A DNA stretch of 64,000 bases, from positions 248,001-312,000 of the forward strand of contig JAXLNO010002694.1 in the NCBI GenBank assembly GCA_038087875.1. Reading direction: 5' to 3'. Shown here piece by piece: positions 31,697 through 52,909 of the stretch. The number at the start of each line of letters is the position of its first letter. The stretch's first letter is position 1. Origin of the DNA: Malacoraja senta (lineage: Eukaryota). Below the pieces are notes generated by a model. It was given only the letters and a program-made list of their open reading frames with translations. It searched no databases and was not told the DNA's origin. The position numbers and the translations under genes were made by a program.

Positions 31697-33240
31697 TATC
31701 CTCTGGACCTCGATTCTCCTACTCTGGGCAAGAGACTCTGTGCGTCTACCGGATGTATTCCTCTCATGATTTTATACCATATAAGATCACCCTTCATCCA
31801 CCTGCTCTCCAAGGAATTGAGTCCCAGCCTACTCAACCTCTACCTGATAGCCCAGACCCTCAAGTCCTGGCAACATCCTCGTAAATCTTCTCTGTACGCT
31901 AACCAGATCACTCTTCGAAACTGAAGATAATAAGCAAATAATATTCTGACGTCCTTTTAATTGATTTTTATTATAATTTCTTTTTATTACCCATTGTATA
32001 ATAGAAAATAGTATTTTGACATCCATTTAATATATTTGTATTAAAGATATTATACAATGTATGATAATTTTTACAGCAAAAACAGGTGATCTTAAAAAGA
32101 CAACAGGACACAGACCCTGGTGAGTTTAAAGGGAGAGCGGATAACAGACCCCAGCATTTTAAAGGATCAGTAGAACTGGGCTCCAGTGTGTGAGAGGGAG
32201 GGTGGGAGTCAGCTTCTGCCTCATGTGAACTACCAAGATTTCCAAATAATTGGATAGTGGACAATCGGTATTTTACTGCATTGTGGAACTGAGAAAAAGC
32301 ATTAATCACAAATGCTGGAGTTACTCAGCTGGTCAGGCAGCGTCTCTGGGGGAAAGGAATAGCTGACGCTTTGGGTTCCGACTATTCTCGAGACCGAGAG
32401 TCAGGAGGGAGGGAAACTTACAGATATGAAAAGTAAAAGTGATATCTCAGGTCAAAAGGCCTGGACAGTGATTGTGGAGAGGATGATTCCAGTAGTGGAA
32501 GATTCTAGGACCAGAGGGCACAGCCTCAGAATAAAAGGACATGCCATTAGAATGGAGATGAAGAGGAAATCTTGATGCTGGTGAATCTGTAGAATCCATT
32601 ACCACAGGTGGCTGTGGAGGCTAAGTCATTGGATATTTTTAATGCGTAGATTGATAGTTTCTTGATTAGTAAGGGTGTCAAAAGTTACAGGGAGAAGCAA
32701 GGAGAATGGGATTGAGAGGGGAAAATAGATCAGCTTTGAATGTATGGCAGAGCAGACTTGATGGACTCAATGGCCTAATTCTGGTCCAATGACTCATGAT
32801 CTTGTGAAAAGCTCAGGCCTGGCACAAAGCTTGCAGTCCACAGGGCAGCAGTGATCTCTGGTCTTCTATATATTTTGGGGGCTATCTATCTACAACATCC
32901 ATGGATGTTGCGTGACCTGCTGAGTGGTTCCCGTTTTTATTTCGGAGTGCTCTCGGTATGGAGTTTGCATGTTCACACTGGGACTGTGTGCGTTTTTTCA
33001 GGGTGCTCCGGTTTCTTCCCACACTCCAAAGACGTGCGGGCTTGTAGGTTAATTGGCTTCAGTCAAAATTATAAATTGCCCCTAGCGCGTAGGATAGTGC
33101 TAGTGTACGGGGTGATCGCTGGTCGGCGCGGACTCAGTGGGCTGAGGGGTCTGTTTCCACACTGTATCCCTAAAGTCTAACGAATCATCCATTCCAATGA
33201 GAGGGCACCAGTACACTCGAGTAGGGTCCATGATTGGGGA

Positions 33241-33348
33241 TAGACACAAAATGCTGGAGTAACTCAGCGGGACAGGCAGCATCTCTGGAGAGAAGGAATG
33301 GGTGACGTTTCGGATCGAGACCCTTATTCAGACTGGGCAGTCAGACTT
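33241..33348 (-). mobile_element. Penelope terminal-repeat fragment inserted in the last MHC exon
   Basis: 12-bp TSD CATGATTGGGGA (33229-33240, 33349-33360); sequence matches the hammerhead-containing repeat family. Confidence 0.85.
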
Positions 33349-33449
33349 CATGATTGGGGAGTCTGACTTGGGAAGCATTTTCTCTTTCTCGTTCCTGTCA
33401 ACTCCTCCTGCTGTTACATCCTTCTGCAAAGACTGACTGCTGGTGGAAC
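33328..33449 (-). CDS. MHC class I exon 7 (terminal cytoplasmic exon)
   Basis: Acceptor ...tctatcttag; phase-compatible (G)STSSQSLQKDVTAGGVDRNEKEKMLPKSDSPIMKSDCPV*; the last 6 aa and the stop derive from an insertion. Confidence 0.7.
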
Positions 33450-34167
33450 CTAAGATAGAGAGTAACAAGGTGAGTGGAAATTCCAGGCAAGATTTAGACA
33501 GCACAGTGGCGCAGTGGGTAGACCTGCTGCCGCACAGCGACAGAGACCCAGGTTCCATCCTGACCTCGGGTGCTGCATGTGTGGAGTTTGCACGTTCTCC
33601 CTGTGACCACGTGGGTTTCCTCCGGCTGTCCTGGTTTCCTCCCACATCCCGAAGGCGTGTGGGTTTGTAGGTTAATTGACCCTAGTGTCAGGGAGTGGGT
33701 GCAAATGTGGGGTAATGTAGAACTAGCGTGAACACATCCACGATGGTTGGCGTGGACCCGGTGGGCTGAAGAGCCCGTTTCCATGCTGTATCCCAAAACT
33801 AAACACCATCCTACGTCCTTCTCTCTCCCCACCGCCACATTCCCCACCCTCCCCTCAACCCTCCTCACACAAGGGGGGTGACTGCCTAGAACGAACTGCC
33901 AAGGTGGTTGAAGCAGATAGGAATGTGGCATTTTAAAGACTTTTGGATAGGTATATGGATACAATGGGAATGGAGGGATATGGATTATGGGCAGACAGAT
34001 AAGTGATGGTCATGGCATCATGTTCGGCCCAGACACTGTGGGCTGAAGGGCCCATTCATGTGCTGTACTGTTCTATGTCCGATGTTCCATTATTGTGATC
34101 TATGCTGGGAGCTGAATTTAGCACCAAGTCCTGCCCTAGTCCAACAAGTCCGTACAATGTTACTTAC

Positions 34168-34197
34168 CTGATGAGGAAGAGTCAGTCTCACTGGATC
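34168..34197 (-). CDS. MHC class I exon 6 (Ser-rich cytoplasmic exon, 30 nt)
   Basis: tttgtttag|GATCCAGTGAGACTGACTCTTCCTCATCAG|gtaagt = (G)SSETDSSSS, phase 1-1. Confidence 0.85.
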
Positions 34198-34569
34198 CTA
34201 AACAAATGAAAAGGCACAAGTCAGCTGCTGAGAAATGTCACTGCGGAAACACTGCCACAGGCTCCGCATCAAACTACTTCCACAAAAACAAGCACATCAT
34301 ATTCTGGGACAATTCTTCCTTGAGGTTAAACTGCAGCTGGAGATATTGGAGAGAGGGAGCACTGCACTGTAGCATAGGGAATGGAGGGAGTGCTGCACTG
34401 TTGGAATGAGGGAACTGATCGAGTGCTGCATTGTTGCACAGAGAGCCGAGGGAGCGCTGCATGGCTGCACAGAGAACTGAGTGAACCGAGGAGTCCCATA
34501 CAACTGCTGGACGAGTGCGTTCCACGTGTCTGTGCAGTGTGTGAGGTTGCAGCCCCTGTTCCAATATCT

Positions 34570-35030
34570 AAAGCGGCTGCTCCTTGCCTTCTGGCTGCAC
34601 TTCACACCCACCATCCTCATCTTTGGACACCCTATGCGTAGGTGAGAGGGTAGGGCCGAGGATGTCCTGGTTGGGTTGCTTCTAGGCCTGACCAAGCTGG
34701 CCATCCGCAAGTCACGGAGCCAGGCGGAAGAGGCCTTTGCCTGAGCCGGCTGCCTGCCCCTTTTCCGTGGATATGTCCGCGCCCAGCTGGTTTTAGAAAG
34801 GGACTAGGCGCTGTCCATGGGCGCCCTGGGGAATTTCCGGGACCGCTGGGCATCGCGGGGCGGGGGGATGAATGCATCCTTGACAAGGATTGTAATATAG
34901 TCGTTTAATTTTCAGTATATTTAAGAATATTTGTTTTACTTTGTGCTGTGGTGGTGGGTTTGTTGTTATCGTTTTGTATTGTACATATTATTCTTGTAAA
35001 TAATTGATTTAAATTATTTTTTGGTATAAA
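34570..35030 (+). mobile_element. Tx1-type LINE 3' fragment
   Basis: LLLGLTKLAIRKSR...AGCLPLFRGYVRA motif followed by an AT-rich 3' UTR. Confidence 0.65.
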
Positions 35031-35537
35031 AAAATGTTCTATTTGCTTGCTCTGTGCCTCTTTGATGGAGTATTGCTCATTTTCAGTGCGTTTTTGAGGC
35101 TCAGTATATTGCAATTAAAAGAATCTCAACAGACAGGCTGTGGCAGCCCAGTGGTGCAGCCGTTAGAGGCGCTATCTCACAGTGCCAGAGCCCCGGGTTC
35201 GATCCGGACCACGGGTGCAGAGTTTGCACGTTCTCCCTGTGACCGCGTGGGTTTGCTCTGTGTGCTCCGGTTTCCTCCCACTTCCCAAAGATGTGCAGAT
35301 CTGTAGGTTAATTGTCCCTCTGTAAATTGCCCCACCTAGTGTGTAGGGAATAGATGAGGAACGGGATAACATACAGCTAGTGTGAACGGATGATCGATGG
35401 TCAGCGTGGACTTGGTGGGTTGAGGGGCCTGTTTCCTTGGTGTATGTCTAAACTAAACCAAGTGCTTGAGGTTAACAAATGTGGGTGGCTTGTCCCTGAC
35501 TGTCGCATGCGAAACAGATCGTGCAATGCGGTCTTAC

Positions 35538-35669
35538 CCTTGCCAAAACAGCTGTAGTCTTTCACCACTCCTGAACCCTTCTTCCACAAGTTGAAAACAG
35601 CCCACAGTGTGCACAGAAACAGCAGGATAGCTGGGATCACCAGCCATATAAGAACACGGCCACCTTGAT
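35538..35669 (-). CDS. MHC class I exon 5 (transmembrane + proximal tail)
   Basis: ttgtttaattag|...|gtaaga, 132 nt, phase 1-1: DQGGRVLIWLVIPAILLFLCTLWAVFNLWKKGSGVVKDYSCFGK. Confidence 0.9.
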
Positions 35670-36346
35670 CTAATTAAACAAGAAGTCATTGTATTATCAA
35701 CGGACAGGAACTATCAGTCAGCGCATAGTGTACCCAACCCTTACCCAGCGTCCCTTACCCAGAGGTGGCACAGTGGCGCAACTGGTAGAGTTGCTGCCTC
35801 ACAACACCAGAGACCCAGGTTCAATCCCGACCTCGGGACAAAGCCGAGCAAGTGATAGGTGGATACAGGTGAAATGGGGTAGTGGGGTTGATTGGCAGAT
35901 GAGTGGGCAAAGGCCACAGGGCGCCACAGTGGCACAGCAAGTAGAGCTGCTGCCTCACACCACCAGAGACCCAGGGTCGATCCCGACCTCTGGTGCTGTC
36001 TGTGTGTGGAGTTGCACATTCTCCATGTGGCCACGTGGGTTTCCTCCGGTGCTCCACTTTCCTCCCACATCCCAAGAAAGACGTGCGGGTTTGTAGGTTA
36101 ATTGGCCCTCTGGTATGTATCGAGTGAATGAGAATATGAGATAACATCGAATTATTGTGAACATGTGAACAGGTGGTCAGCGTGAATTCGTTGGGCCGAA
36201 GGGTCTGTTTCCGTGCTGTATCTCTACACTAAACTAAATCCCACCCTCCTGACCTCTCTCCCTCTCTCTGGATACACAATTAGCTTGATGGTAGGAAGCA
36301 GCTGAAGAAGGTGTAAGTTTTGCTTGTTTGGACTAGAGCCCGTGAC

Positions 36347-36817
36347 CAGTGGACTTTCATATGAAGAAAGACTGGATAGACTTGGCTTATACTCGCTAGA
36401 ATTTAGGAGATTGAGAGGGGATCTTATAGAAACGTACAAAATTCTTATGGGGTTGGACAGGCTAGATGCAGGAAGATTGTTCCCGATGTTGGGGAAGTCC
36501 AGGACAAGGGGTCACAGCTTAAGGATAAGGGGGAAATCCTTTAAGACCGAGATGAGGAAAAACTTTTTCACACAGAGAGTGGTGAATCTCTGGAACTCTC
36601 TGCCACAGAAGGTAGTTGATGCCAGTTCATTGGCTATATTTAAGAGGGAGTTAGATGTGGCCCTTGTGGCTAAACGGATCAGGGGGTATGGAGAGAAGGC
36701 AGGTACGGGATACTGAGTTGGATGATCAGCCATGATCATATTGAATGGCGGTGCAGGCTCGAAGGGCCGAATGGCCTACTCCTGCACTTATTTTCTATGT
36801 ATCTATGTATCTATGTA
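36347..36817 (+). mobile_element. Young CR1 3' fragment in MHC intron 4
   Basis: GLSYEERLDRLGLYSLEFRR...GYGEKAGTGY* plus 3' UTR and CTATGTAT tail. Confidence 0.92.
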
Positions 36818-38250
36818 TGCGTCGGGGATCGTGCTGAGCCCATTGCCGATGTTGATCGCTATTAACGATTTGGATGAAAATGTAAACATATAATGGTGGA
36901 GTAACTCAGCGGGACAGGCAGCATCTCTGGATAGAAGGAATGGGTGATGTTTCGGGTCGAGTCTGAAGAAGGGTCTCGACCTGAAACATCACACATTCCT
37001 TCTATCCAGAGATGCTGCCTGTCCCGCTGAGTTACTCAAGCATTTTGTGTCTATCTTCAGTTTAAACCAGCATCTGCAGTTCCTTCCTACACATTGGATG
37101 AGAATGTACAAGCCATGGCTAGTAAGTTTGCAGATGACACTAAAGTAGTTGGTATTGTAGAGAGGGAAGATGATTAGAGTCATAGTCATATAACGTGTAA
37201 ACAGGCCCATCAGCCGAATTTTCCTATGCAGACCAACACACCCCATCACACTAGTTCCACCCGTCAGCATTTGGCCCATATCCCTCTAAACCTGTCCTAT
37301 CCATGTGCCTGTCTAAATGTTTCTTATACATTGTGATAGTACCTGCCTCAACCACCTCCACCAGCAGCTTGTTCCATATGCCAACCGCCCTGTGTGTAAA
37401 AAAGTTGCCCCTCAGTTTCCTATTGCAATTTTTAAAAATAATCTTTTGGTTATGAAGAATTACAGTGGGATCTTAATCAGCTGGGCAGGTGAGCCGAGGA
37501 ATGGGAAATGGAGTTTAATTCAGACAAGTCCGAGGACTTGCATTTCCCTTTCCAGTGACTCGTCTGAAGAAGGGTCTAGACCCAAAAGGACACCCATTCC
37601 TTCTCTCCAGGGATGCTGCCTGTCCCGCTGAGTTACTCCAGGTTTTTGTGTCTATCAGAGGTAGTCACGTTGGTGAAGAAGGCTTTTGACTTTCATCTGT
37701 AAGGGCATTTACTATGGAGGAACTGCACATGCTGGTTTACAAAAAATGAACTGCAGATTCTGGTTTACAAAAAAAAAGACACAAAGTATTGGATAACTGA
37801 ATGGGTCAGGCAGCATCTCTCGAGAACAAGGAAAGACGATGTTTTGGGTTGGATCCCTTCTTCAGACGCTAGACGAAGTTTATGTTTGGGATCCATCCTC
37901 AGACTGAAAAAGTGCCCTAATCCAAAACGTCGCCTATCCATGTTCTCCGGGAGATGCTGCCTGACCCACTGAGTTACTCCAACACTTAATGTGAAAAACA
38001 AAGAGCTGCAGATGCTGGTTTATACCAAAAATAGGCACAATGTGCTGGAGTAACTCAGGAGAAAAAGGATGGGTGATGTTGTGGGTCGGGCTTCTTCAGT
38101 GTGAAAAAGGGTCCCGACCCAAAATGTCACCTATCCATGTTCTCCGGAGATGCTGCCTGACCAGCTGATTTGCTTTAGCACTTTGCGTCTTTCATTGAGG
38201 TTGGGACGTGTTGCTATGGTTGTACAAGTTGTTCTTCATCCATCACTTAC

Positions 38251-38526
38251 CCCAGACAACGTCCATTCCTTCGGGCCTGCTGCTGTGCCACACGCGGCAG
38301 ACATGCTCCCGTCTCTCTGCAGGCTCCATCAGCAGAGTTACCCTCATCTGATAGGTGCCATCGTGGTTGGGTAGAACGCCAGAGTTTTTGTTCGCAGGGA
38401 CAGGTTGCCCATCCCTGAACCAACTTACGTTGATGGTCTGCGGGAAAAAGCCAGTGGCCAGGCAATGGAGAGCGAGTTTCTGACCATCGGGAGACCTCCC
38501 GGAGTAGACCCTCACATCTGGAACAG
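38251..38526 (-). CDS. MHC class I exon 4 (alpha3, Ig C1 domain)
   Basis: 276 nt, ctctcag / gtaagt; AVPDVRVY...HCLATGFFP..INVSW...VLPNHDGTYQ...HVCRVWHSS; both Ig cysteines present. Confidence 0.97.
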
Positions 38527-41500
38527 CTGAGAGAAAAGAGAGAGAGAGACATGGAGATACAGGGAACCACAGACACTGGAATCTTGAGTTAATATTGGAG
38601 AAGCTCATTAGACTTTAGAGATACAGCGCGAAAACAGGCCCTTCCGCCCACTGAGTCCGAACCAACCAGCGATCAACACTAGCACTATCCTACACACACT
38701 AGGGACAATTTACAATTTTTACCGAGCCAATTTTACCGATAGACCTGTACGTCTTTGGAGTGTGGGAGGACACTCGAGCACCTGGAGGAAACCCACGCGG
38801 TCACAGGGTGACGGTACAAACTCCGTGCATTCAGCGCCCATAGTCAGGATCAAACCTGAATCTCTGGTGCTGTAAGGCAGCAATTCTACCGCTGCGCCAC
38901 CGTGCTGGACAAACCCAGAGGGTCAGGCAGCATCTGTGGAGGACAATGGGCAGGAACACTCTCTGAACCAAAACGCCGTCTGTCCATTCCCACCACCGAT
39001 GCTGCTTGTCGGAGCCATTAAGCTTGTCAGTATTATTATCATCATGTCTGATATTATTAGTTTTAGTTTTTATCTGCCTGTACTTTTGTAGGTGGGATTT
39101 GATACATAGTAGGGGTGTGTTCTTTTGTTAGAGGCGTCTGGCGCAGACTCTCAGATTAGAAGTATCAGTTTGGTGTCGGAGAATGAGGGGAAACAGTTTT
39201 CTACCATGATCACACACATGTTATGAGACGGCATACCTTTATAAGAAGCTTTTATGTGATTTAGATGATGTGAATGGAACAGCGATAAAGAACAGAAAGT
39301 TATGAGTTATTTCTTTGTTTTGTATTACTTCAATAAAAAAGCAATTAATCAAGAAACAAAGTCTGGAAGATTCATCTTTGCTGTCGTGTGTCGTGAGTGC
39401 GTTAGGCTATACCTCCGAATCATCTCCGATAATTAATGGCTATCGAAGTTGGACTTTGAGAATGTTGTAAAAACTGCCATTATACTGCCTGTCCCACCGA
39501 GCCCCTCTAGCACCGTTTGCTGCCTTAGAACGCCAGAGACTCGAGTTTGACCCCGACTACAGGTGCTGTATGTATGGCGTTTGCACGTTCTCCCCGTAAC
39601 CTGCGTGGGTTTCCCCCAAGAGCTCCAGTTTCTTCCCACACTCCAAAGATGTACGGGTTTGTAGGTTAATTGGCTTGGTAAAATAGTAAAATGTCCCTAT
39701 TGTGCATTGGATAGTATTAGTGTATGCGGATCGCTGGTCGGCACGGACTCGGTGGACCAAAGTGGCCCGTTTCCACGCTGTATCTCTAATACTAACCTAA
39801 AAACTGTGGAAGATAGTCATGGCCAGGGTCTCGAGTGCACAATCTGTGGCGGTCAACAGCGCAACAGATTGAGAGCTCCTGAGACCCAGGTTCGATCCTG
39901 ACCCCATTGCTGCCTGCATGGAGTTTGCAAATTCTCCCTGTGAGTCCATGGGTTGCCACCAGGTACTTCGGTTTCGTCCCATATCCTAAAATTAAGTGGC
40001 CTAATAGTGTCAAGTGTAAAGATGAGTGGTGGAATCTGGAGGAACAAGATGGGAATAAGGGATTGGTGTAGAATATAGGACAGTACAGCATGGAAACAGG
40101 CCCTTCGGCCCACCATGTCTGTGCTGATCATGATGCCAATCTTAACTAATAACATCTGCCTGCACAGGGTTTGAATCCCTCCATTCCTCTGTTCCTTGTT
40201 TAAATGTCTGTCTAAATGTCTTTCAAACGTTGCTATCATGTTTATCCCCACCATTTCTCCTGGCATCACGTTCTGGGGACCAATCACTTGTCTTGCAAAT
40301 CTCCTTTTTGCTGATGGCCTCTATTCCAGGCATCATTCTGGTCTACCACTTCTGCACCCTGCCCAAAGCTTCCACTGTGGCACCATCTTGTGGCCGGCCC
40401 ACTTTGGTCTTGAACAGTCGTTCATCGAGCTCGAGCTCTTATGTGAACTCGCGTGATCTGGGCCGACCAATCGACGCAGAACTGGGTGGTCAGGTGACGG
40501 GGTGCAACTGACGATGGAGCTAGTCTTCCCTTGGCAGTGAACGCGTTAACACACTTTGCACTTTGGTACTAATATTAAACTGAGTGTTTAAATATTAAAC
40601 TGAGTGTTTATACAACCTCTTCACCACATCCTTTCTTTAACAGGGTGACTAGAATGGCACACAATACTCCAAATGAGACCTAATCAAACTTTTACAACTG
40701 CAATATGACTTCCCATCTTTTATATTGACTGATGAATGCTAATATATCATAGGCCCTCCTCACCACCCTATCTACTTGTGTTGCTACTTTCAAAGAACTA
40801 TGGATTCACACCCAAGATCCATCTGTACATCATTGCTCCCTGGAGCCTTGCCATTTATCTTTCCTCTTACATTTGACCTTCCAAAATGCAGCAATTTGCA
40901 CTTTTCCAGATTTTTTTTTAGATTAAAAAGAAAAAAATATTTATTTATTTATTGTACATGTTAAAAAATACAAACACAAATAAACTTATAAGCAATAAAA
41001 GGAAAACAAAACACAAAGGAAAACAAACAAATAAGTAACTCAAATAATACAAATAATATCGTTCATGTTCAAAAGGGGTAAGAAGAAGTTCGAAAACGTT
41101 TCTGGTCCTACCCCCTCTTATTTTCCATACATTTTCATGGAAAAACAAAATAATGGGAACAAATGGACCCAAAATCTGTTGAACAGTCCACAAACAAGAA
41201 ATAACCAAACAGAAAAGAAAATCACTGGTCCAGCTCATAACCATTCAATCTTTTGTTTCTGAAAAGTGTTTTTAGTTTGAATAGAGTCTTACATTTTTTC
41301 AGCTCATCATGGCATTAAACATTATCTGCCAATTCTCTACCCACATCACCAGCTGGTCCATATCCAGTTGATTTCTTTGACAACCTCTCTCGCTTTCAAC
41401 AACAGAAATTATGTGTTCTGTGCAAACCTACTCTTCAGCCCACCTATATTTAGACTTTAACACTTTATACTTTGGAGACACAGCATGGAAACAGGCCCTT

Positions 41501-41899
41501 CAGCCCACCGAGTCCGTGCCAACTAACGATCACCCCCTTACACTAGCACTATCCTACACACTTGGGACAATCTCAATTTTTACCAAACCTACAAACTTGT
41601 ACGTCTTTGGAATTCGGGAGGAAACCAGGGCAACCTGAGGAAACCCGCATGGTCACAGGGAGAATGTACAAACTCTGTACAGACAGCACCCGTAGTCATG
41701 ATTGAACCAGGGTCTCTGGCGCTGGCAACTCTACCGCTGTGCCACCATGCCGCCACAAATTATTGCCCAAATCATTATTTAGTTTAAAGATAGATGCGAA
41801 ATGCAGGAGTAACTGTGTATAGTGTTTAGTGTTTAGTGTCTAGTGTGTCCTAGAAATGTGCTACGGGGATAACTTTGTTTACAACCGCGCTGAGTTACT

Positions 41900-44800
41900 T
41901 ACCGTCGGTTTAAAATGATGCACCGACGTTAGAAGTGATTTCCAGTGATCTCGCAACATACCCAGGTCATAGCGAGCCCACCGGGCTCTTCCTGGATTGT
42001 TGTCGGGACTGGGAGGCAGCGCAGACGGCGAAGGGAGCGGAAGCAGAAGCGAGGATGCCGGGCGGGCCTACTTGCTAGGGTAAATAAACAGCCACATAGA
42101 CTTCCGTTACCGAGCATCTTCCTCACCAACACCAGATCCATCGTCCACATAACAGACGCACTGGAACTGCAAATTGCTGCAAACACCTATGTTCACGAAT
42201 GCTGTGTGATGGTCATAACAGAAACCTGGCTGATCCTGGACGCTGCAGTACAACTGACGTACCACCCATCGCCAAGACAGAAACAGTGACTCCGGGAAGA
42301 AGAGAAGAGGTGGTCTTTGCATCTATGTACATAACGATAAGTGTACAAACAGTAGGATCATATACACCCATTGCTCTCCTTACTTAGAAGTCATGACTGC
42401 CATTTGCAGACCCTTCCATTTGCCTAGAGAGTTCACAGTAGTAATGATGACAGCTGTTTATATCCCACCAGATGCTAATGTTAGCACAACTCTTGTCCAT
42501 CTGCATGACACCATAAACAAACAACAGCAGGCTCATCCTGAGGGAGTTTACATTGTTGCGGGGGATTTCAATCAAGTGCTTCCTAAATTCGTACAATACG
42601 TACAGTGTCCCACCAGGGGGTAAAACATACTGGACCACGTCTACCACAACATAAAGCATGCATATAGATCAGTACCCCTCCCACATTTGGGCCTGTCAGA
42701 CCATCTCTCACTGCTCCTCATCCCAGCATATATTTCCCTCAGGAGGAAAACCAAGCCGGACATAAAGATCATAAAAACCTGGCCTGAGGGAGCACTCTCT
42801 CAGCTGCAGGGTTGCTTTACACATACAGCATGGAATATATTTCAACAACAGGACTTACAGGACTACACAGAAACTGTACTGTCCTACATAAAGAACTGCA
42901 CCGATAATGTCACTGGTTGAAAAACCTATCCGGGTTTATCCCAACCAAAAACTCTGGATGACTAGTGAAGTACAGTCACTCCTGAGAAAGTGCAACTCTG
43001 CCTTTAGATCGGGTGACAGGGCCCAATACAGCATGGCAAGAGCAGAACTGAGGAGAGGCATGAAAGCTGCAAAGGAAGCCTACAAGAAAAAAGTGGAGGA
43101 CCATCTCACACACAATAACCCACGGCAGGTGTGGCAAGGATTACATTTAAATATTATCTAAATGGTGGCCGATTAGGAAATGGGGAGATGCAGCGAGACC
43201 TGGGTGTCATGGTACACCTGTCATTGAAAGTAGGCATGCAGGTGCAGCAGGCAGTGAAGAAAGCGAATGGTATGTTGGCCTTCATAGCAAGAGGATTTGA
43301 GTATAGGAGCAGGGAGGTTCTACTGCAGTTATACAGGGTCTTGGTGAGACCACACCTGGAGTATTGCGTACAGTTTTGGTCTCCAAATCTGAGGAAGGAC
43401 ATTATAGCCATAGAGGGAGTGCAGAGAAGGTTCACCAGACTGATTCCTGGGATGTCAGGACTTTCATATGAAGAAAGACTGGATAGACTTGGCTTATACT
43501 CGCTAGAATTTAGGAGATTGAGAGGGGATCTTATAGAAACGTACAAAATTCTTATGGGGTTGGACAGGCTAGATGCAGGAAGATTGTTCCCGATGTTGGG
43601 GAAGTCCAGGACAAGGGGTCACAGCTTAAGGATAAGGGGGAAATCCTTTAAGACCGAGATGAGGGAAAACTTTTTCACACAGAGAGTGGTGAATCTCTGG
43701 AACTCTCTGCCACAGAGGGTAGTTGAGGCCAGTTCATTGGCTATATTTAAGAGGGAGTTAGATGTGGCCCTTGTGGCTAAAGGGATCAGGGGGTATGGAG
43801 AGAAGTAAGGTACGGGATACTGAGTTGGATGATCAGCCATGATCATATTGAATGGCGGTGCAGGCTCGAAGGGCCGAATGGCCTACTCCTGCACCTATTT
43901 TCTATGTATCTATGTATCTATGTACAGCAAATCACCAACTACAAAGGAAACTCACCTGTGACTGACGGTGCTAATGCCTCGCTGGTGGAGGAACAAAACC
44001 ATTTCTTTGCTCGCTTTGAGGCAAAGAGGCCTCATGCAATCACGCTGCTCCCACCGACCTCCAGCTCCCATTCGCTCACTCTCCAGGAACACCAAGTGAG
44101 GCGCGCGGTCAAGTCGGTGAACCCAAGGAAAGCCGCTCCCTCCAAACCTTGACCCTCATCAGTTTGCTTATAGAGCAAACAGATGGATGGAGGATGCCAT
44201 CGCCACTGCCCTCCACACTGCACTGAGCCATCTGGAACACCCGGGGAACTATGTAAAGTACGCGGTAAGTACGCGCTAAGTTCGCGCGTGACGTAACCTG
44301 CGTCATACTTACCAATCAGCTGGGCAGGAGGCGGGCCAACTGAATTTGGGTGTCGCACGGCGTCGGGCGGTGACGTCATCATGCAACGGCACGCCGGGCG
44401 GTGACATCATCGCGCAACGCCACGCGCTAGGCGTACGCCGTTAAGACGCTGCGTACGACGTCGAGACGCTGCGTACGCCCTCAATGTGCCTGCGGGCCGA
44501 CAGGCTGTTGACGCGCGGAATTTTCGGACAGTGCGGGATTTTCGGAGCCCCGCGCGATGTCGGGACCAGCCCTGCACAACTCCATCCGCCTCCGCGCTTG
44601 GAAGTGGGACCGGGTCGGCGCAGCCCGTACGCCTCCAGCGACCACGTTTGGTCGTGCCAGACGCATGCAATCGCATGCAAGTGGGACAGGCCCTTTAGAC
44701 TTCCCCCCTCTCACCTGCATCTGGATAAAGGACTTCCTTACTAACCGCCCATAAACAGTCAAAATGGGCCCCCACTGCTCCTCCACCCTCGCACTCAGCA

Positions 44801-45620
44801 CTGGTTCTCCACAGGGCTGTGTGCTGAGTCCACTCCTCTATGCTCTGTACACTTACGACTGCACTCCCATCCACTCCACAAACTCCATTATTAAATTCGC
44901 GGATGACACCACAGTGGTCGGACTCATATCAGGAGGAGACGAGGCAGCGTACAGAGACGAGGTCTTGAAGCTGTCAGAGTGGTGTTCTGCGAGCAACCTG
45001 GCACTTAATATCAGCAAAACAAAGGAAATGGTCATCGACTACAGAAGGCACAGAACGGACCCAGGCCCGCTCTACATCAACGGGGACTGTGTCGAGAGGG
45101 TTTCCACCTTCAAATTCCTGGGAACGCACATCGCGGAGGACCTCTCCTGGTCTGCCAACACTTCAGCGGTGGTAAAAAAGATTCAGCAGCGATTGCACTT
45201 CCCGAGAGTGCTGAGGAAGAACAGTCTAGAGGAGAAGCTGCTGGTGGCCTTCTACCGCTCCACCATCGACAGTGTGCTGGCACATTGTATCACGGTGTGG
45301 CAATGCCGGCTGCTCAGCAGCAGACAGGAGAGCACTGCAGAGAGTGATCAAAACTGCCCAGAAAATCATCAGCTGCCCTCTGTCTTCCCTGGAAGACATC
45401 TCCAGCTCTCGGTGCCTCTGTAGAGCCAGGAAAAGAATCAAAGACCCCTCCCATCCTGGACAGTCCCTGTTCAACCTCCTGCCCTCTGGTAGGCGGTACA
45501 GGTGCGTCAAATGCCGGACAAACAGACTCAAGAACAGTTTCTTTCCCTGGGCCATCAGAACTCTAAATTCCTCAAATATCCACACGACATGAGAATGCTG
45601 TCATCCATTCCACTATAAAA
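41900..45620 (+). mobile_element. Rex1/Babar-type LINE (EN + RT), degenerate, with nested CR1 (~43152-43923) and a Harbinger-like MITE half (~44255-44695)
   Basis: RRRRERKQKRGCRAG, CCVMVITETWL, VYIPP, AGDFN, SDHLSLLL, TGSPQGCVLSPLLY, KFADDTT. Confidence 0.9.
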
Positions 45621-46890
45621 CAGACCACTCAGCTAATATTTCTTTTTTTAAATTCTTTTAAAGTATTTATTAAATTTTAAAGTGTAATATTCTCCCAGTG
45701 CAATGTTGTTCCTAGGTGTGATAATTATAATGTATCTACTATTTCATGCAGTTAAATAACATATTATAAAAGTATAAAGTATCCTTTATTGTCATTCAAA
45801 CTTTTGGTTTGATCGAAATTACGTGCCTTGCAGTCATGACAGAGAATAAAATAACAGAACGCACAATGAACACAGTTCAACATTCACCACAGTGAGTCTA
45901 CCAGACACCTCCTCACTGTGATGGAAGGCAAACGTCTTAAAGTCCTTGTCCATTGAATGTATTGGATGTGTTTTTGTCTTGTTTGGACTTGTTTTGGTTG
46001 CACTGATCAGTAGCAGCTCTCCTAATGTCATTGTATTTCTAAGTACAATGACAATAAAGGCTTATTATTATTATATTATTATTATTATTATTATTATTAT
46101 TACAGGAGACTTTTAAAGTCAGGACCCTTCATCAGTCTTTGGCATTTACAAACTGGAAAAAGGATTCTGATGTTCTACTCTATGTCCCTCATAATTTTAT
46201 ATTCTTCTATCACATCTTTCCTCAACCAACAGGGCTCCAGAGAAAACAATCCAATTTTGTCCAACCTCTCCCTATAGCTAATACCCCTAATTCAGAAAAC
46301 ATTCTAGTAAACCCCTTCTGCACCCTCTGCAAAGCCTCCACATCCTTCCTGTAATGGGGCGATGAGAACAGCACACCATGCTCTAAATGCGGCGTAACCA
46401 AAGTTTTACAAAGCTGCGTCATGACTTCCTGACTCTTATGCCCAATGCCCTGACTGATGAAGGCTAAGCACACATTACAACTCAGTGGGCTAGCGTTAGG
46501 GGAGAGGGGTCCCATCACCCAGAGTGTGTGGGTGTGGGGAAGTGGTTCCCATACCATGGGGGAGACAGCGGGATGGCATGGATTCACCCATGAACACAGT
46601 TTGGCGTTCGGCGCAAAACCCAAAGTGTTGGAGCAACTCAACAGGTCAGGCACCATCTGTGCAGGGAATGGATCAGCAACGTTTTGGGTTGGGACCTTTC
46701 CTCATAAGGGGCTACATGCCAAGCGGCAAGGGGGGTAGATAATGCAGGTCCACACAGCAAGTGTGGCCTTTGGTCAACCAGAAATAGGTGTGACTTCCCA
46801 TCCTGGTGACCAAACCAAGGGTGATAGAGGAGATAAGACAAATGCTGGAGTAACTCAGTGGGACAGGCTGCATCTCTGGAGAGAAGGAAT

Positions 46891-46925
46891 GGGTGACGTT
46901 TCGGGTCGAGACCCTTCTTCAGACT
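46891..46925 (-). ncRNA. Minimal hammerhead-like motif (GUC), intact core; sense to the MHC pre-mRNA in intron 3
   Basis: AGT-CTGAAGA-A-GGGT-CTCG-ACCC-GAAAC-GTC-ACCC on the minus strand, ~80 nt downstream of the alpha2 donor. Confidence 0.5.
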
Positions 46926-47005
46926 GATAGAAGAGGTGGCGGGACAAGAGGGGGATAGGATTGGCGGGCGGAGGGGCAAACGACGGCTGGCACAGCGTGA
47001 CCTAC

Positions 47006-47281
47006 CTTTGCGAGATAGCATGGAGTCTCCGTACTCGAGGTATTTCTTCAACCATTCCACGCAGATCGTCTCGGTGTAATGCTTCTTGTAGATGTTGTGG
47101 GCTGTGTCGCTGTTCCACTTGTCCCTCGTGCTCAAGGCCAAGGGTGAGGCGGTGACCCAGATGGACCGCTCGAAGTCAAAGCTGATCAGATCCTGGCCGT
47201 TGAAGGCATACTGGCGCACCCCGCTCACCGTCCCGTTGTCCGTGACGCTGCAGCCCGACGTGTACTGCAGGTAGTTCAGCT
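47006..47281 (-). CDS. MHC class I exon 3 (alpha2 domain)
   Basis: 276 nt, tccag / gtaggt; ELNYLQYTSGCSV...QYAFNGQDLISFD...STRDKW...YTETICVEWLKKYLEYG; both alpha2 cysteines present. Confidence 0.98.
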
Positions 47282-48498
47282 CTGGACATGGAGAGAACGT
47301 CAAAAGCCGTCCGAAACTCACACACATCCTCTACATCCACCAACCCAGGGGTGGCATCTACAAGATGGATATTACCCACCATTACCTGCCCATTACTGTC
47401 CCAATTCAGCACGGAACTCAACATCCCGTTACACTCCCAACAGTTGTACAAAATGTTGGCGAAGCCACGTGTTAGTTTTGTTTATTATTATTGTCGTCAT
47501 AGACTCATACAGCATGGAAACAAGCCCTTTGGCCCAACTTGCCCACACCCACAAATATTCCCATCTGCACTAACCCCACCTGCCTGCGTTTGGTCCATAT
47601 CCCTCTAAACCTGTCCTATCCATCTGTCCATATCATTGTTTCTTAAACGTTGCAATTGTCCATACATCAACTACCTCCTCTGGCAGCTCATTCCATACAC
47701 CCACCACCCTTTGAGTGGAAAAGTTACCCCTCAGATTCATATTGAATCTTTCCCCCCTTCAGCTTAAACCTATGTTCTCTGGTTCTCGATTCCCCTGCTC
47801 TGATCAAGAGACTCTGTGAGTCTACCCGATCTATTCCTCTCACGATTTTATACACCTCAAGAATACTGAGGTATATTAAAAAGCTTTTTCTTGCATGCTA
47901 TCCAATAGGCAAAAAGGCGATAGTGTACAGATAAAGGGAATAATGTTTAGTACAAGATAAAGTCCAATTAAAGATAGTCCGAAGGTCTCCAATGAGATAG
48001 GTGGCGACTCAAGCCAGCTTTCTAGTTGGTGATAGAATGGCTCAATTGTCTCTAAACAGCCTTTGAAGAAACTGTCCCTGAATCAGGAGATGTGTGTTTT
48101 CACACTTCCATCCCTCTTGCCAAACGGGAAAGGGGAGAAGATTGAGTGACTGGGGCGAGACTCATCCTTCATTATGCTGGCAATCCTAGGATGGCTGATT
48201 TGGAGGGTTGTGTTCAGTTTTGGTCACCCTGCTCTTAGAAGGAAGTTAATAAACTGATGAATAGGGCAGAGAAGGTTTACGTTCTCCCCGTGACCTGCGT
48301 GGGTTTTCTACGCGATGTTCGTTTTCCTCCCACACCCCAAAGACGTACAGGTGTATGGATCAATTGGCGGTGCGGACTTGGTGGGCCGAAGGGCCTGTTT
48401 TCACGCTGAATCTCTAAACCAAACTGAACTCCTAACATGTCTGTGCACACCATTGCCCATGGCATGCCGTGTGAATCAAGCACTGAGGATGCACATAC

Positions 48499-48762
48499 CC
48501 ATCTTGCTGCGGTTAGATCGTTGCATTACGATCTGGACATTGGCCATGTACAACTTGTGTCGATTGATCAATCTCTGGGTCTCCTTGTCCCAGTAGTCAC
48601 TTCCCAGGGCTCTCTCCATCCAAGGCTGCCGGGCAATGTCCTCCTCGGTTTTGCTGTCAAAGTAGGTTATCTGAACGCCATCCAAAACTCCGATGTGCAC
48701 AAACTCAGGAAGGTCCACACTCCCGACCATCGAGGTGTAGTAATATTGCAGTGAGTGTGTCT
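48499..48762 (-). CDS. MHC class I exon 2 (alpha1 domain)
   Basis: 264 nt, ttacag / gtatgt; (E)THSLQYYYTSM...PEFVHIGVLDGVQITYFDS...PWM...DYWDKET...QRSNRSKM; N86-equivalent sequon NRS. Confidence 0.98.
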
Positions 48763-50104
48763 CTGTAAATCACAACACAACACAACCTCAGAATGAGATA
48801 ACATGGTGCCGGCCTTTCAGACACCTCCTCTCCTCTATCTCCTGCCCGCCACTCCCCAGTAAAAGAACATGGAACATAGAACAGTACATTACAGGACCAG
48901 GCCCTTGGACCCACAATGTTTGTGCCAAACATGATACCAAGTTAAACTGATCTAATCTGCCTGTACATGGGGCATATCCCTCTATTATTTTCACTTACAA
49001 GTGCCTACCTAAAAGCCTCTTAAATGGCACTATGGTATCTGCCTCCATCACCACCACCCCTGTCAGTGCGTTCCTGGCACCTACCACCCTCTGTGTAAAA
49101 ATCACACCCAGAATATCTTCATTAAACTTTCCACCGCTCACCTTATAGCTATGCCCTCTAGTTTTGGATATTTTAACTCTCGGAAAAAGGTTCTGTCTAT
49201 CTACCCTGTCTATGCATTATGATTTCATATTCTATCAAGCCACCCTTCAACCTCCAATGTTTCAGAGAAAACAATCCAAGTTTATCCAACCTAATGGGCA
49301 GAGAAAGCTCAAGAAATGAACGCCGTCATCTCAATGGAGACACAAGAAACTGCAGATGCTGTAATCCTGAGCATAAACAAAATGCTGGAGTAACTCAGTG
49401 GGTCAGGCAGTATCTGTGGAGGGCAGGCCGAGTTTCAGGTCGGGACCCTGTTTCGACTCCATCTCCGTTGGAAGAAAATTATTAAAACAGAGAGGTGAAA
49501 GTGTACAGTTATAGTCTCCACATTACAGGAAGAATGTGGCTACACTGGAGAAGGCGCTGAGGAGATTCATCAGGATGTTGCCTGGGATGAAGCTGTTATG
49601 AAGAGAGACCAGAGAGGCTGGGTTTGCTTTCCTTTGAGCAGTGGAATGTGAAGGGGGAATCCTAATGGACGCGTACAACATTATGAGAGGCATAGATAGG
49701 ATAGAGAGTAAGAAACATTTCCCCATAAGGAAGACTCTAAATAAGGAGGCGTAGGTTTAAGATAAGGAGCAAGATCTTCATCGAGGATTTGGTGTTTGAA
49801 ATCTGGAAGACACTGCCTGAGAGGTGATTCTCCCAACATTTAAGAAAATCTGGGTAAAGAACCAGATTGCCAAGGCAGAAAAAGTAATGAACCAAATGCT
49901 GGTAAATAAATTAGTAGAATGCAATTTGCTGCATTTTGAGAAGTCAGATCATGGCAGGATCTTCACGGTGAATGACAGGCCTCTGGGGAGTGTTGTAGAG
50001 CAGAGGAGCCTAGGAGTGCAGGTACATAGTTCGCATAAAGTGGCATTACAGGTAGATAGGGTGGTGAAAAAAGCTTTTGGTACATTGGCCTTCACTAGTC
50101 AAGG

Positions 50105-50995
50105 TATTGAGTATTGAGGCAGCTTACAACCCAGCGTTATGAATATTGATTTCTCTAACTTCAAGTCACCCTTGCAACCCCTCTCCCTCTCTGTCCCTCC
50201 CCCACCCAAGTCGTTGTACTAGTATCAAAATCGTCTTGTGTAGGAAAGAACTGTAGGTGCTGGTTTACACCGAAGATAGACACAAAATGCTGGAGTGACT
50301 CAGTAGGACGGGCAGCATCTCTGGATAGAAGGATTGGGTGACGTTTCGGGTCGAGACCCTTCTTCGGACTTGTCAACAAGACAAGGTCGTCTTGTTGTGT
50401 CTCATTGCCTGTAACTCATTTTGGGGCCACATGAGTGCAACGGCGCCATGTAGACTGGGCAATCGTTTCACTGAACACCTTCGCTCAGTCCCCTTGGAGT
50501 TACCTGATCTCCCAGTTGCCAAACACTTTAATTCCCCTTCCCATTCCTACACTGAGCTTTCTGTCCTCGGTCTCCTCGATTGTCAGAGTGAGGCCAAATG
50601 CAAATTGGAGGTATAGCATCTCATATTTTGCTTGGTCAGCTTACAACCCAGTGGTATGATTATTGATTTCTCTAACTTCAAGTAACCCTTGCATCCCCTC
50701 TCTTTTTCCATCCCCCTCTCGCCCAAGTCATACCAGCATCAAAGTCCGCTTGTTGAGTCTCATTGTTGATACTTGTTTTCACCCAGCACACAGCTAACAA
50801 TGGTCTGTTTCTTTTATCATTGTTACTTTTTAGTATATCTTTAATTTATTTGTTCTATATCTCCCTATATCACCATCTATATCTCTCGTTTCCCTTTCCC
50901 CTGACTCTCAGTCTGGAAAAGGGTCTCCACCCGAAACATCACCCAGAGATGCTGCCAGTCCCGCTGAGTTACTCCAGCGTTTTGTGTCTAGGCTG
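50105..50995 (+). mobile_element. Penelope-like element 3' end: GIY-YIG domain C-terminus plus terminal repeat, in partial-tandem arrangement
   Basis: RLGNRFTEHLRSV...DLPVAKHFNSPSHS..LSVLGLL.CQSEA...LQPSGM.IDFSNFK* (~50440-50685); 3' piece duplicated at ~50118-50240; degenerate hammerhead core at ~50912. Confidence 0.85.
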
Positions 50996-52649
50996 TCTGA
51001 CCCGCTGAGTAACTGCAGCTTTAATTGTCTATATTGAGTATAGAAGTTGGGATGTTATATTAACAGTTATATAAGACATTGGAGAAGACATACTTGGAGT
51101 TTGGTGTTCACTTTTGGTCACCCTGCTATAGGAAGGATGTCATTAAGTTGTAAAGACCACGGAGAAGATTTATGAGGATGTTGCTCAGACTTGAGGGGCT
51201 GAGCTACATGGAGAGGTTGGACTTTATTCCTTGAACGCAGGAGGTTGAGGGGTGATCTTAAAGAGGGGTACTAGATCATGAGGGGAATAGATGGGGTGAA
51301 TGCACAGGTTCTTTACCCAGAGAATAGGAATCAGGAACCAGAGGTCATAGTTTTCAGGTGAGAGGGGAAATAACTTTCTTTAGTTTAGTTTAGGTTAGAG
51401 ATACAGAGTGGGAACTGACCCTTCGGCCCACTGAGTCCGTGCCGACCAGCAATCAACGTACACTAGCACTATCCTACACACTAGGGGCAATTTACAATTT
51501 GAACCAAAGCCAAATAACCTAAAACCCTGTACGTCTTTGGAATGTGGGAGGAAACCAGAGCTCCCCAAAAAACCCCACACAGTCACAGGGAGAATGTACA
51601 AACTCCATACAGACAGCACCCATAGTGAGGATTGATCCCAGGTCTCTGGCACTGTTAGGCAGCTACTCTACCTCTGCGCCACTGTGCTTGTAGGAATCTG
51701 AGGGGCAACTTTTTCATGCAGAAGGTGATGGCTATATGGAACAAGCTTCCAAAAGATGTATTTGAGGCAGGTACTGTAACAACATTTAAAATACTTTTGG
51801 ACAGGTACACAGATAGGAAAGGTTCAGAGGGACATTGGCCAAATGCAGGAAGGTAGGAATAGTGAAAATGGTGCATGTTGGTCGCCTTGGGCAAGTTGGG
51901 CCAAAGATCCTGTTTCCATGCAGTATAACTCCGAGTACTTCCAAAATGTTCTAATTTATTTTTCAGATTGCAGGGCGAGGGATGATCTTATGGAGTGCAT
52001 AAAATCATGAGGGGAATAGACACGATGCATATACAGTTTTTTACCGAGGGTAGGGGAATCAAAAAGAAGAGGACATATGTTCAAGGTGAGAAGGGATAGA
52101 TTTAATACGGACCTGAGGGCTATCTTTTTCACTCAGATGGTGGTAGTATATAGAACCAGCTGCCGGAGGAGGTAGTTGAGGCAGGCATGATAACTGCATT
52201 TAAAAGATACTTAGTCAGGTACTTGGAGAGGAAGATTTTAACGGGATGTGGGCCAAACGTGGGCAAATGGGACTAACTTAGATGGGGCAGCTTCGGGGAA
52301 TGAAGGAGTTAGCCGAAGGGTCTGTTTCTTTGCTGTATGACTCTAGTAAAGATAGACAGCATAGACAGGGTGGGCCATAGGGCCTGCTCTTATACTATAA
52401 ATCTATGATTATATCTTTCTCAAATTTATGTTGACCTATTTATTACCTGGCACGCATTGACCTAGCTCTCTCCCCTTTTCCATACCCCAGCCCCCATGAC
52501 AATCAGTCTTTACAAGGGTCTCGACCCGAAATGGCACCTGTCCATGGTCTCCAGGTTTGCTGCCTGAGCCGCAGATGGATTCCAGCACTTTGTGTACCTT
52601 TGTCCTCTAGTCTTTCCTAAGTGAGACTAGAGAAATGAAGTCCACTTAC

Positions 52650-52701
52650 CCGAACAGACCCAGGGAAGGCATAGACACAAGGTACCGAGTAGCAGCAACA
52701 T
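52650..52701 (-). CDS. MHC class I exon 1 (leader)
   Basis: MLLLLGTLCLCLPWVCS + G|gtaagt (52 nt, phase 1); splices in frame to E-THSLQY; promoter motifs lie directly upstream. Confidence 0.9.
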
Positions 52702-52831
52702 TCCCCAAAACAAATGCCCCGGGCAGGGCAAGGGGGCAAAGAGACCAAATAAGAATAAACAACAAATGTTTATCCACACATTATAGCGTAGTTTGCATTT
52801 CAGGCATTTCCTCGAATTCAATGCGGAAGCT

Positions 52832-52843
52832 GAGAAAGTGAAT
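52832..52843 (-). promoter_or_regulatory. ISRE / IRF-E-like site
   Basis: GAGAAAGTGAAT on plus (ATTCACTTTCTC on minus), 131-142 nt upstream of the ATG. Confidence 0.55.
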
Positions 52844-52867
52844 GATTAGGCACTCGGATACAAGTGG

Positions 52868-52909
52868 CCAATGAGAGATTTTCACCGGAACTGCTCACCA
52901 GTTACCGGG
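52868..52909 (-). promoter_or_regulatory. MHC X1/X2-Y module
   Basis: Minus strand CCCGGTAACTGG-TGAGCAG, 18-nt spacer, (CTC)ATTGG; resembles MHC X and Y boxes in sequence and spacing. Confidence 0.7.

Follow-up and report, generated by a model that had tools for sequence, protein, structure and literature searches.

The 64,000-nucleotide stretch of the Malacoraja senta genome analysed here (hereafter the window) contains an MHC class I gene, which raises the question of whether this skate locus belongs to the classical UAA lineage or to a non-classical lineage, and what kind of ligand its groove might hold. The UDA lineage of cartilaginous fish is described as a single-copy lineage of sharks, rays and chimaeras with eight of nine peptide anchors and a conserved groove, and was reportedly described by Almeida and colleagues in 2020 as keeping eight of the nine invariant anchor residues. 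The first-pass annotation of the window, made from the sequence alone, had placed an intact class I gene at 33328-52701 and proposed that it was of the UDA type rather than UAA. On the evidence given below, the gene is very probably the skate orthologue of chondrichthyan UDA, encoding an intact, membrane-anchored heavy chain in seven exons. The UDA lineage is already known from the literature, and the gene is an expected member of it, not a new kind.

A 383-residue MHC class I heavy chain was rebuilt from the window sequence on the minus strand, running from 52701 to 33328 in seven exons with a coding sequence of 1152 nucleotides; every acceptor is AG, every donor GT and every boundary in phase 1, so that the gene proposed at first pass is indeed complete. 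Exon 1 (52650-52701) carries the ATG and a 17-residue signal peptide, ends in a GTAAGT donor in phase 1, and is collinear with exon 1 of Leucoraja erinacea and Amblyraja radiata. The alpha1 domain (exon 2, 48499-48762, 88 codons) holds Y7, Y59, R84 and an NRS glycosylation site, and its junction is the same as that of L001, a transcript of a related skate, while the alpha2 domain (exon 3, 47006-47281) holds L123 within QDLIS, T143, K146, W147, Y159, Y171 and the C101-C164-type cysteines. Exon 4 (38251-38526) encodes alpha3, a C1-set Ig domain with 68% identity to the sawfish protein P0156, and exon 5 (35538-35669) the connecting peptide, the transmembrane helix and the start of the cytoplasmic tail, matching proteins P0002 and P0159. 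A serine-rich cytoplasmic micro-exon of 30 nucleotides (exon 6, 34168-34197; GSSETDSSSS) is present in the X1 isoform of L. erinacea and in transcripts, and is skipped in isoform X2. Exon 7 (33328-33449), with 95-98% nucleotide identity in two other skates, supplies the end of the tail and a TGA stop. The features general to class I are thus all present: leader, alpha1, alpha2, alpha3, transmembrane segment and tail on separate phase-1 exons, both domain disulfides, an N86-type NRS glycosylation site, and, as modelled for the L. erinacea orthologue, a class I fold. Homology searches were run with individual exons and with P0295, a protein of 93% identity, in place of the joined 383-residue protein.

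An interspersed repeat copy at 33239-33335 contains the stop codon and the last two codons of the gene, and the introns are crowded with retroelements. The gene spans 19.4 kb here. Its sawfish counterpart is shorter, at 12 kb, and those of A. radiata and L. erinacea are longer, at 28.4 and 32.5 kb, the differences in length being due to differing repeat loads.

A stop codon within a repeat and introns full of retroelements would also suit a gene that is intact by chance and silent or decaying in M. senta. We regard this as very improbable, as the frame is open, the splice sites are intact, dN/dS in alpha1 and alpha2 lies well below 1 against two other skates, the promoter region has been conserved and transcripts of the orthologue exist. 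An alignment of three skates delimits a proximal promoter at 52766-52872 on the minus strand, with motifs whose functions are putative: an ATTGG Y box (52872-52868), an ISRE-like element TTCACTTTCTC (52842-52832) and TATAAT (52785-52780). L001 is a full-length cDNA contig that begins with a SMART adapter; the adapter junction, marking the capped 5' end, maps at about 52766, and the six exon joins are those of the window model. The orthologue is therefore transcribed and identically spliced in a related skate. The expression evidence, like the polymorphism evidence below, comes from a related species and not from the M. senta genome.

In the IQ-TREE phylogeny (LG+C20), the window protein grouped with its L. 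erinacea and A. radiata counterparts with support of 100/100, and skates grouped with sawfish, again with 100/100. These RefSeq orthologues (XP_055521806, 383 residues, in L. erinacea; XP_032903621 in A. radiata) are collinear with the window at the DNA level. The wider elasmobranch clade (100/99) contained one gene per species, including the nurse shark protein QGX07421.1, and chimaeras formed its sister group, with a joint support of 100/99. Database searches for the clade likewise returned one protein per species, and the window holds one copy. The lineage thus appears to be single-copy; it is common to sharks, chimaeras and batoids (skates and sawfish) and separate from classical UAA.

That the gene might instead be the classical, polymorphic, peptide-presenting UAA gene of the skate is suggested by its eight anchors, its full-length membrane form and its classical-like modelled fold. 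However, the UAA clade, anchored by P0176 (a match to PDB 6LUP at 3e-97), sits elsewhere in the tree, and constraining the batoid proteins to join it was rejected (delta lnL 136.6, AU p = 0.00016). A second candidate for a UAA-like sequence, P0163, was discarded; it had no PDB match below 1e-60 and belongs to a large multicopy clade found only in sharks, and the homologues recovered with it carry only generic RefSeq names, with no lineage labels.

The neighbourhood of the gene bears on the same question. At 840-763, 32 kb downstream of the UDA gene and likewise on the minus strand, is the leader exon of a UFA-type gene. The first-pass annotation had seen no second class I copy in the window, and this stands in so far as no further alpha1, alpha2 or alpha3 exon occurs within the 64 kb, but has to be amended for the UFA-type leader exon. 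It had also treated tight linkage to TAP and PSMB8/9 as an arrangement that would speak against UDA. Of the ten longest open reading frames outside the gene (from a set of 286), eight were retroelement pieces (reverse transcriptase or endonuclease), one was a hAT-type piece and one had no match, and neither TAP nor PSMB was seen in these ten long frames. A GNAT acetyltransferase gene, which in L. erinacea lies upstream of the UDA gene at a distance of 6 kb, had no match in the window and probably lies past its end, since LINE insertions occupy 53.1-63 kb.

In the sawfish the order is BRD2, B2M, ZFP2-like, LOC127585849 and UFA/UGA-type genes, with B2M on one side of the orthologue and the UFA/UGA-type genes on the other. 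The window contains neither BRD2 nor B2M, and the adjacency of UDA and a UFA-type gene seen there agrees with the sawfish order BRD2-B2M-UDA-UFA. A class Ib cluster has been described as containing UDA (Verissimo et al. 2023, PMC10751288); its supplement labels the genes simply 'MHC-Ib'. The UFA-type neighbour in the window and the place of the sawfish orthologue beside B2M in the class Ib cluster both speak against UAA.

It could also be argued that the clade is real but represents a non-classical lineage other than the published UDA, whether another named one or one still unnamed. We take QGX07421.1 to be the nurse shark representative of UDA; its record name is just "nonclassical MHC class I antigen". 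We nevertheless consider another lineage improbable. The clade appears to have one copy per species, includes rays and chimaeras and retains eight of nine anchors; most of these are lost in the large multicopy clade found only in sharks, which we assume to be UEA-like; UBA reportedly arose from UAA; the UGA molecule (PDB 9CH4) and that of PDB 8GM8 are only about 34% identical or fall in another clade; and the sawfish orthologue lies within the cluster described as containing UDA. In the whale shark, one gene model joins a UDA module with a second module that matches PDB 8GM8 and is presumably UFA. We strongly infer the name UDA from clade, published traits and synteny, rather than from a direct match, because the sequences compared included none labelled UDA, UBA, UCA or UEA by their authors.

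With the gene very probably a UDA orthologue, the remaining question is what its groove might hold. In HLA-A2 numbering the skate protein keeps Y7, Y59, R84, T143, K146, W147, Y159 and Y171 and has leucine at position 123, exactly as read at first pass; in mature skate numbering the nine sites are Y7, Y57, R82, L120 (in QDLIS), T140, K143, W144, Y157 and Y169. The residues that clamp the ends of a peptide are therefore retained, with the single replacement of Y/F123 by leucine. The resulting pattern YYRLTKWYY is common to skates, sawfish and six shark genera and was found in 11 of 13 members of the elasmobranch clade; Mustelus has lost Y59 and K146.

At the sequence level, the residues predicted to line the groove are nearly frozen among elasmobranchs. 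Across 12 species, 32 of 45 mapped groove positions were invariant against 39 of 135 others (Fisher p = 1e-6), the sites having been placed in HLA-A2 numbering by hand via landmarks, with the stretch 148-158 and position 45 uncertain. The invariant count rises to 35 of 45 when Mustelus is left out, and conservation is imperfect in that 13 of the 45 positions vary. The fixed pocket residues (HLA-A2 numbering) include Y9, H24, D45, E63, R66, L67, R70, L73, N77, I80, L95, Y97, S99, R114 and Y116. Domain identity is higher in alpha1 (65.8%) and alpha2 (66.1%) than in alpha3 (59.1%), and dN/dS between the window and other skates is 0.12-0.24 in alpha1 and alpha2, values based on few substitutions, with the Leucoraja-Amblyraja comparison noisy. 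Among 13 distinct Leucoraja-like sequences, from an unstated number of individuals, 9 of 169 alpha1/alpha2 positions varied, none of them at a mapped groove position, while alpha3 had 11 variable sites. The high polymorphism that the first-pass annotation had named as speaking against UDA was not seen in these sequences, which come from another species. The CD8-binding loop of alpha3 was set aside as an argument, being inconsistent among UDA members.

A groove that is frozen between species and does not vary in these 13 sequences is a further point against UAA. Taken with the separate clade, an anchor set of eight out of nine and the absence of TAP and PSMB from the ten long reading frames scanned, it leaves the assignment to UAA barely credible.

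The ectodomain of the L. erinacea orthologue (93% identical), modelled with AlphaFold2 (pLDDT 93.2), matched solved class I chains in Foldseek with TM scores of 0.85-0.91. The closest structures were peptide-loaded chicken BF2 (TM 0.90-0.91) and shark UAA (6LUP), with MR1 less close (TM 0.80-0.83); the PDB holds no UDA structure.

From these features we suggest that the UDA heavy chain would pair with beta2-microglobulin and hold short peptides in a closed-ended groove, much as classical class I molecules do. As its specificity pockets are invariant, what it shows may be a single conserved peptide or a small range of peptides, not a diverse repertoire; its role would then be in monomorphic recognition, like that of HLA-E or Qa-1, instead of polymorphic T-cell restriction. 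HLA-E and Qa-1 are monomorphic peptide presenters. By analogy with them, UDA might be the cartilaginous-fish counterpart of such a sentinel, with frozen pockets, one conserved self or microbial peptide and an invariant receptor, an idea that we put forward only tentatively.

A frozen groove is also typical of MR1- and CD1-type molecules, and UDA could instead bind a non-peptide class of ligand or, needing no ligand, be recognised as a marker by an innate receptor; the leucine in place of Y/F123, the gene neighbours of lipid-binding type and the presence of MR1 among the good structural matches are all compatible with this. We think it unlikely. Four clamps for the N-terminus and four for the C-terminus have all been kept through more than 270 My of elasmobranch history, which would be hard to explain if the groove did not bind the ends of peptides. 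The model also lies closer to peptide-loaded BF2 than to MR1, and the F pocket, as judged by the HLA-A2 pockets, stays hydrophobic with leucine at 123.

Should the sentinel reading of UDA as a peptide presenter be true, the system would predate the split of sharks and rays, and a modified form would have been kept since the chimaera split. From the fixed pocket set the UDA peptide motif could be predicted directly, and a table of the groove positions frozen between species could guide work on the ligand and structure. The value of the locus as a discovery is small, as the lineage is published and RefSeq already lists the orthologues of two other skates, with generic names; its use is as a clean annotation that gives exact exon coordinates, assigns the lineage and shows the tandem arrangement from UDA to UFA for a skate.

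Compared with UDA as known in cartilaginous fish, the M. senta gene differs in nothing essential: it falls in the same 100/99 clade, has the eight-of-nine pattern with L123, apparently one copy per species and a conserved groove, and probably belongs to the class Ib cluster, which is close to BRD2 and B2M (placement as in PMC10751288). Skate UDA differs from that of the sawfish in having about 13 additional C-terminal residues, with the stop codon in the repeat copy. With UAA (PDB 6LUP), to which the modelled skate ectodomain is about 36% identical, it shares the fold, the domain plan and the clamps Y7, Y59, R84, T143, K146, W147, Y159 and Y171; it differs in forming a separate clade, in having L123 where UAA has Y/F, and in not being seen beside TAP or PSMB. 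Pocket positions variable in UAA-like sequences, such as 24, 45, 66, 70, 97, 114 and 116, do not change in UDA, where they are H, D, R, R, Y, R and Y. The UFA/UGA molecules of lipid-binding type (PDB 9CH4 being UGA) share the class Ib cluster, and one of them is the next gene downstream of skate UDA, but they have lost the clamp residues and form the most distant branch of the tree. The likeness to HLA-E and Qa-1 is one of analogy, covering non-classical status, intact peptide clamps, a near-invariant groove and an implied narrow peptide set; UDA is not orthologous to them and is far older, being present in chimaeras too.

The minus strand of the window carries a seven-exon gene, rebuilt here from the raw sequence, in which exon 1 (52701-52650) encodes the signal peptide, exons 2 (48762-48499), 3 (47281-47006) and 4 (38526-38251) the alpha1, alpha2 and alpha3 domains, exon 5 (35669-35538) the connecting peptide and transmembrane helix, exon 6 (34197-34168) a serine-rich micro-exon of 30 nt and exon 7 (33449-33328) the tail with a TGA stop. 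Each intron begins with GT and ends with AG, and the six exon junctions all fall in phase 1. The 1152-nt CDS translates into 383 aa, the length given in the first-pass annotation, and the residues that it had read at the nine anchor positions (Y7, Y59, R84, L123 within QDLIS, T143, K146, W147, Y159 and Y171 in HLA-A2 numbering) were recovered exactly; in skate mature numbering these are positions 7, 57, 82, 120, 140, 143, 144, 157 and 169.

The closest database proteins were XP_055521806 of L. erinacea (383 aa, identical architecture) and XP_032903621 of A. radiata (377 aa), both approximately 92-93% identical to the window protein, which marks the window as DNA of a third skate. Their loci are collinear with the window through each exon and unique intron segments and differ by repeat insertions, the gene spanning 19.4 kb in the window, 32.5 kb in L. 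erinacea and 28.4 kb in A. radiata. A public sequencing run yielded a 1272-nt transcript contig (L001) that opens with a SMART cDNA adapter and contains the entire ORF, and since the contig's exon joins coincide with the boundaries of the rebuilt model, the orthologue is transcribed and spliced likewise in a closely related skate. Because L. erinacea isoform X2 lacks exon 6 (34168-34197; P0294 compared with isoform P0295), the cytoplasmic tail occurs in two forms, with and without a stretch of potential phosphorylation sites.

A compact putative promoter block conserved in three skates (52766-52872, minus strand) holds an ATTGG motif (Y box), an ISRE-like TTCACTTTCTC approximately 30 bp downstream and then a candidate TATAAT element, approximately 20 bp upstream of the capped cDNA start of the related skate; a palindromic SINE/MITE-like element common to all three skates lies immediately upstream of the block. 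At the other end of the gene, 33239-33335 is one copy of an interspersed repeat found over 20 times in the window, and this copy spans the stop and the last two codons. The skate C-terminus is approximately 13 residues longer than that of sawfish (ends ...KDKMLV), and each of the three skates, like the mRNA, carries both the extension and the stop.

Starting from the alpha2 exon, a profile-free search and then a search for homologues yielded a single tight group to which each species contributes one protein: skates, sawfish (Pristis), sawshark, horn shark, catshark, smooth-hound, bamboo shark, whale shark and basking shark, together with nurse shark QGX07421.1, labelled 'nonclassical MHC class I antigen', Callorhinchus and one other chimaera. 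In an IQ-TREE analysis of 76 ectodomains (LG+C20+F+G4), the window protein grouped with the two other skates at 100/100, skates with sawfish at 100/100, and the enclosing elasmobranch clade received 100/99 with chimaeras as its sister (100/99). The branching order approximates the species tree, as a single-copy orthologous gene would give. In the study that named UDA, that lineage reportedly occurred in every chondrichthyan examined, in few copies and with little polymorphism, kept eight of the nine invariant residues along with a conserved groove, and was linked to the MHC but lay outside its class Ia block. The clade is very probably UDA, a name that derives from clade membership, published traits and synteny. 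The gene is an expected member of a published lineage, and its orthologues in two other skates already have annotations, though with generic names.

The classical lineage UAA was anchored independently by horn shark P0176, which hit 6LUP, the solved structure of nurse shark class I, at 3e-97 and formed, with three more sequences, a separate clade beside bony-vertebrate class I. Forcing the five batoid proteins together with the four UAA sequences was 136.6 log-likelihood units worse (AU p = 0.00016). The lineage call of the first-pass annotation is thus supported, both by this rejection and by the 100/99 clade shared with QGX07421.1. A large shark-only multicopy clade, which has lost most anchors, is probably UEA. 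Mean identity in this P0163-type clade is 88% in alpha3, 69% in alpha2 and 49% in alpha1, the opposite of the UDA pattern, and one sub-branch has approximately one member per species, at 74-86% identity across shark orders. A further distinct anchor-less clade includes a module matching PDB 8GM8, and identity between the skate orthologue and 9CH4, the solved structure of UGA, reaches only about 34%.

UDA is single copy and belongs, like UEA and UFA, to a class Ib cluster bordered on one side by brd2 and beta2m and on the other by hsd17b8, rxrb, slc39a7 and col11a2 (Verissimo et al. 2023, PMC10751288); a 2025 review lists UDA, UFA and UGA as single-copy lineages, with UBA derived from UAA. The sawfish order is BRD2, B2M, ZFP2-like, LOC127585849 and UFA/UGA-type genes, with COL11A2, RXRB and HSD17B8 further on (gene table, PMC10751288). 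LOC127585849, marked MHC-Ib in that table, shares its name, 'H-2 class I ... Q10 alpha chain-like', with P0156, the sawfish member of the clade. The UDA-to-UFA part of this arrangement is seen in the window, where a leader exon of a neighbouring anchor-less class I gene (840-763, minus strand; MESYNVPVSLLIAVLSLCSVSGDHAG, donor GTAAGA), sharing 65% identity with the leaders of P0238 and P0240, sawfish proteins of UFA/UGA type, sits 32 kb downstream of UDA, head-to-tail and in the same orientation. In whale shark, the RefSeq model P0242 joins a UDA-clade module to one of 8GM8 type, indicating that these genes are adjacent there too. No TAP or PSMB was found among the long ORFs of the window, to which the check was confined.

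The first 2 kb owe their strongly negative GC skew to a C-rich minisatellite (1407-1988; 39-bp unit, approximately 15 copies, 81% matches), which is situated 0.6-1.1 kb upstream of the leader exon of the UFA-type gene. In L. erinacea, a single-exon GNAT acetyltransferase gene (L002:3450-4172; 240 aa, camello/NAT8-like with a hydrophobic stretch) lies 6 kb upstream of UDA; it has no counterpart within the window, where 53.1-63 kb is filled by LINE insertions.

The heavy chain is intact and under constraint, with both peptide-end clamp sets and an unvarying groove. The anchor pattern YYRLTKWYY is common to skates, sawfish and six shark genera, the exceptions being E59 in chimaeras and a derived Mustelus sequence with I59, F123 and A146. 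When 45 HLA-A2 groove positions were placed on the skate sequence by hand from landmarks, 32 of the 45 were invariant across 12 elasmobranch species versus 39 of 135 other alpha1/alpha2 positions (odds ratio 6, p = 1e-6). Between genera, alpha1 (65.8%) and alpha2 (66.1%) are more conserved than alpha3 (59.1%). Comparison of the window gene with the two other skates gave dN/dS of 0.12-0.24 in alpha1 and alpha2 and higher values in alpha3 and the tail, all from small counts. Among 13 distinct Leucoraja-like sequences, which come from a related species, nine alpha1/alpha2 sites were variable, none at a groove position, along with 11 alpha3 sites.

The AlphaFold model of the L. erinacea ectodomain, built on an alignment of 32 relatives, has a mean pLDDT of 93.2 and standard class I topology. 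Foldseek ranked shark UAA 6LUP first; by TM-score, peptide-loaded chicken BF2 was highest (0.90-0.91), with MR1 at 0.80-0.83, and no UDA structure was found in the PDB. Leucine at 123 leaves the F pocket hydrophobic, so the pocket is expected to be modified and not abolished. The protein is predicted to assemble with beta2m and to hold peptides with fixed ends; the chief functional alternative, that UDA has a non-peptide ligand or none, is less probable. The practical value of the work is a precise annotation, and the frozen, specificity-setting residues (H24, D45, E63, R66, L67, R70, L73, N77, I80, Y97, S99, R114 and Y116) provide a list for a ligand search in UDA. UAA-like sequences vary at the specificity positions fixed in UDA, which may present a small and conserved range of peptides to a recognition system that is itself not polymorphic, much as HLA-E or Qa-1 does.
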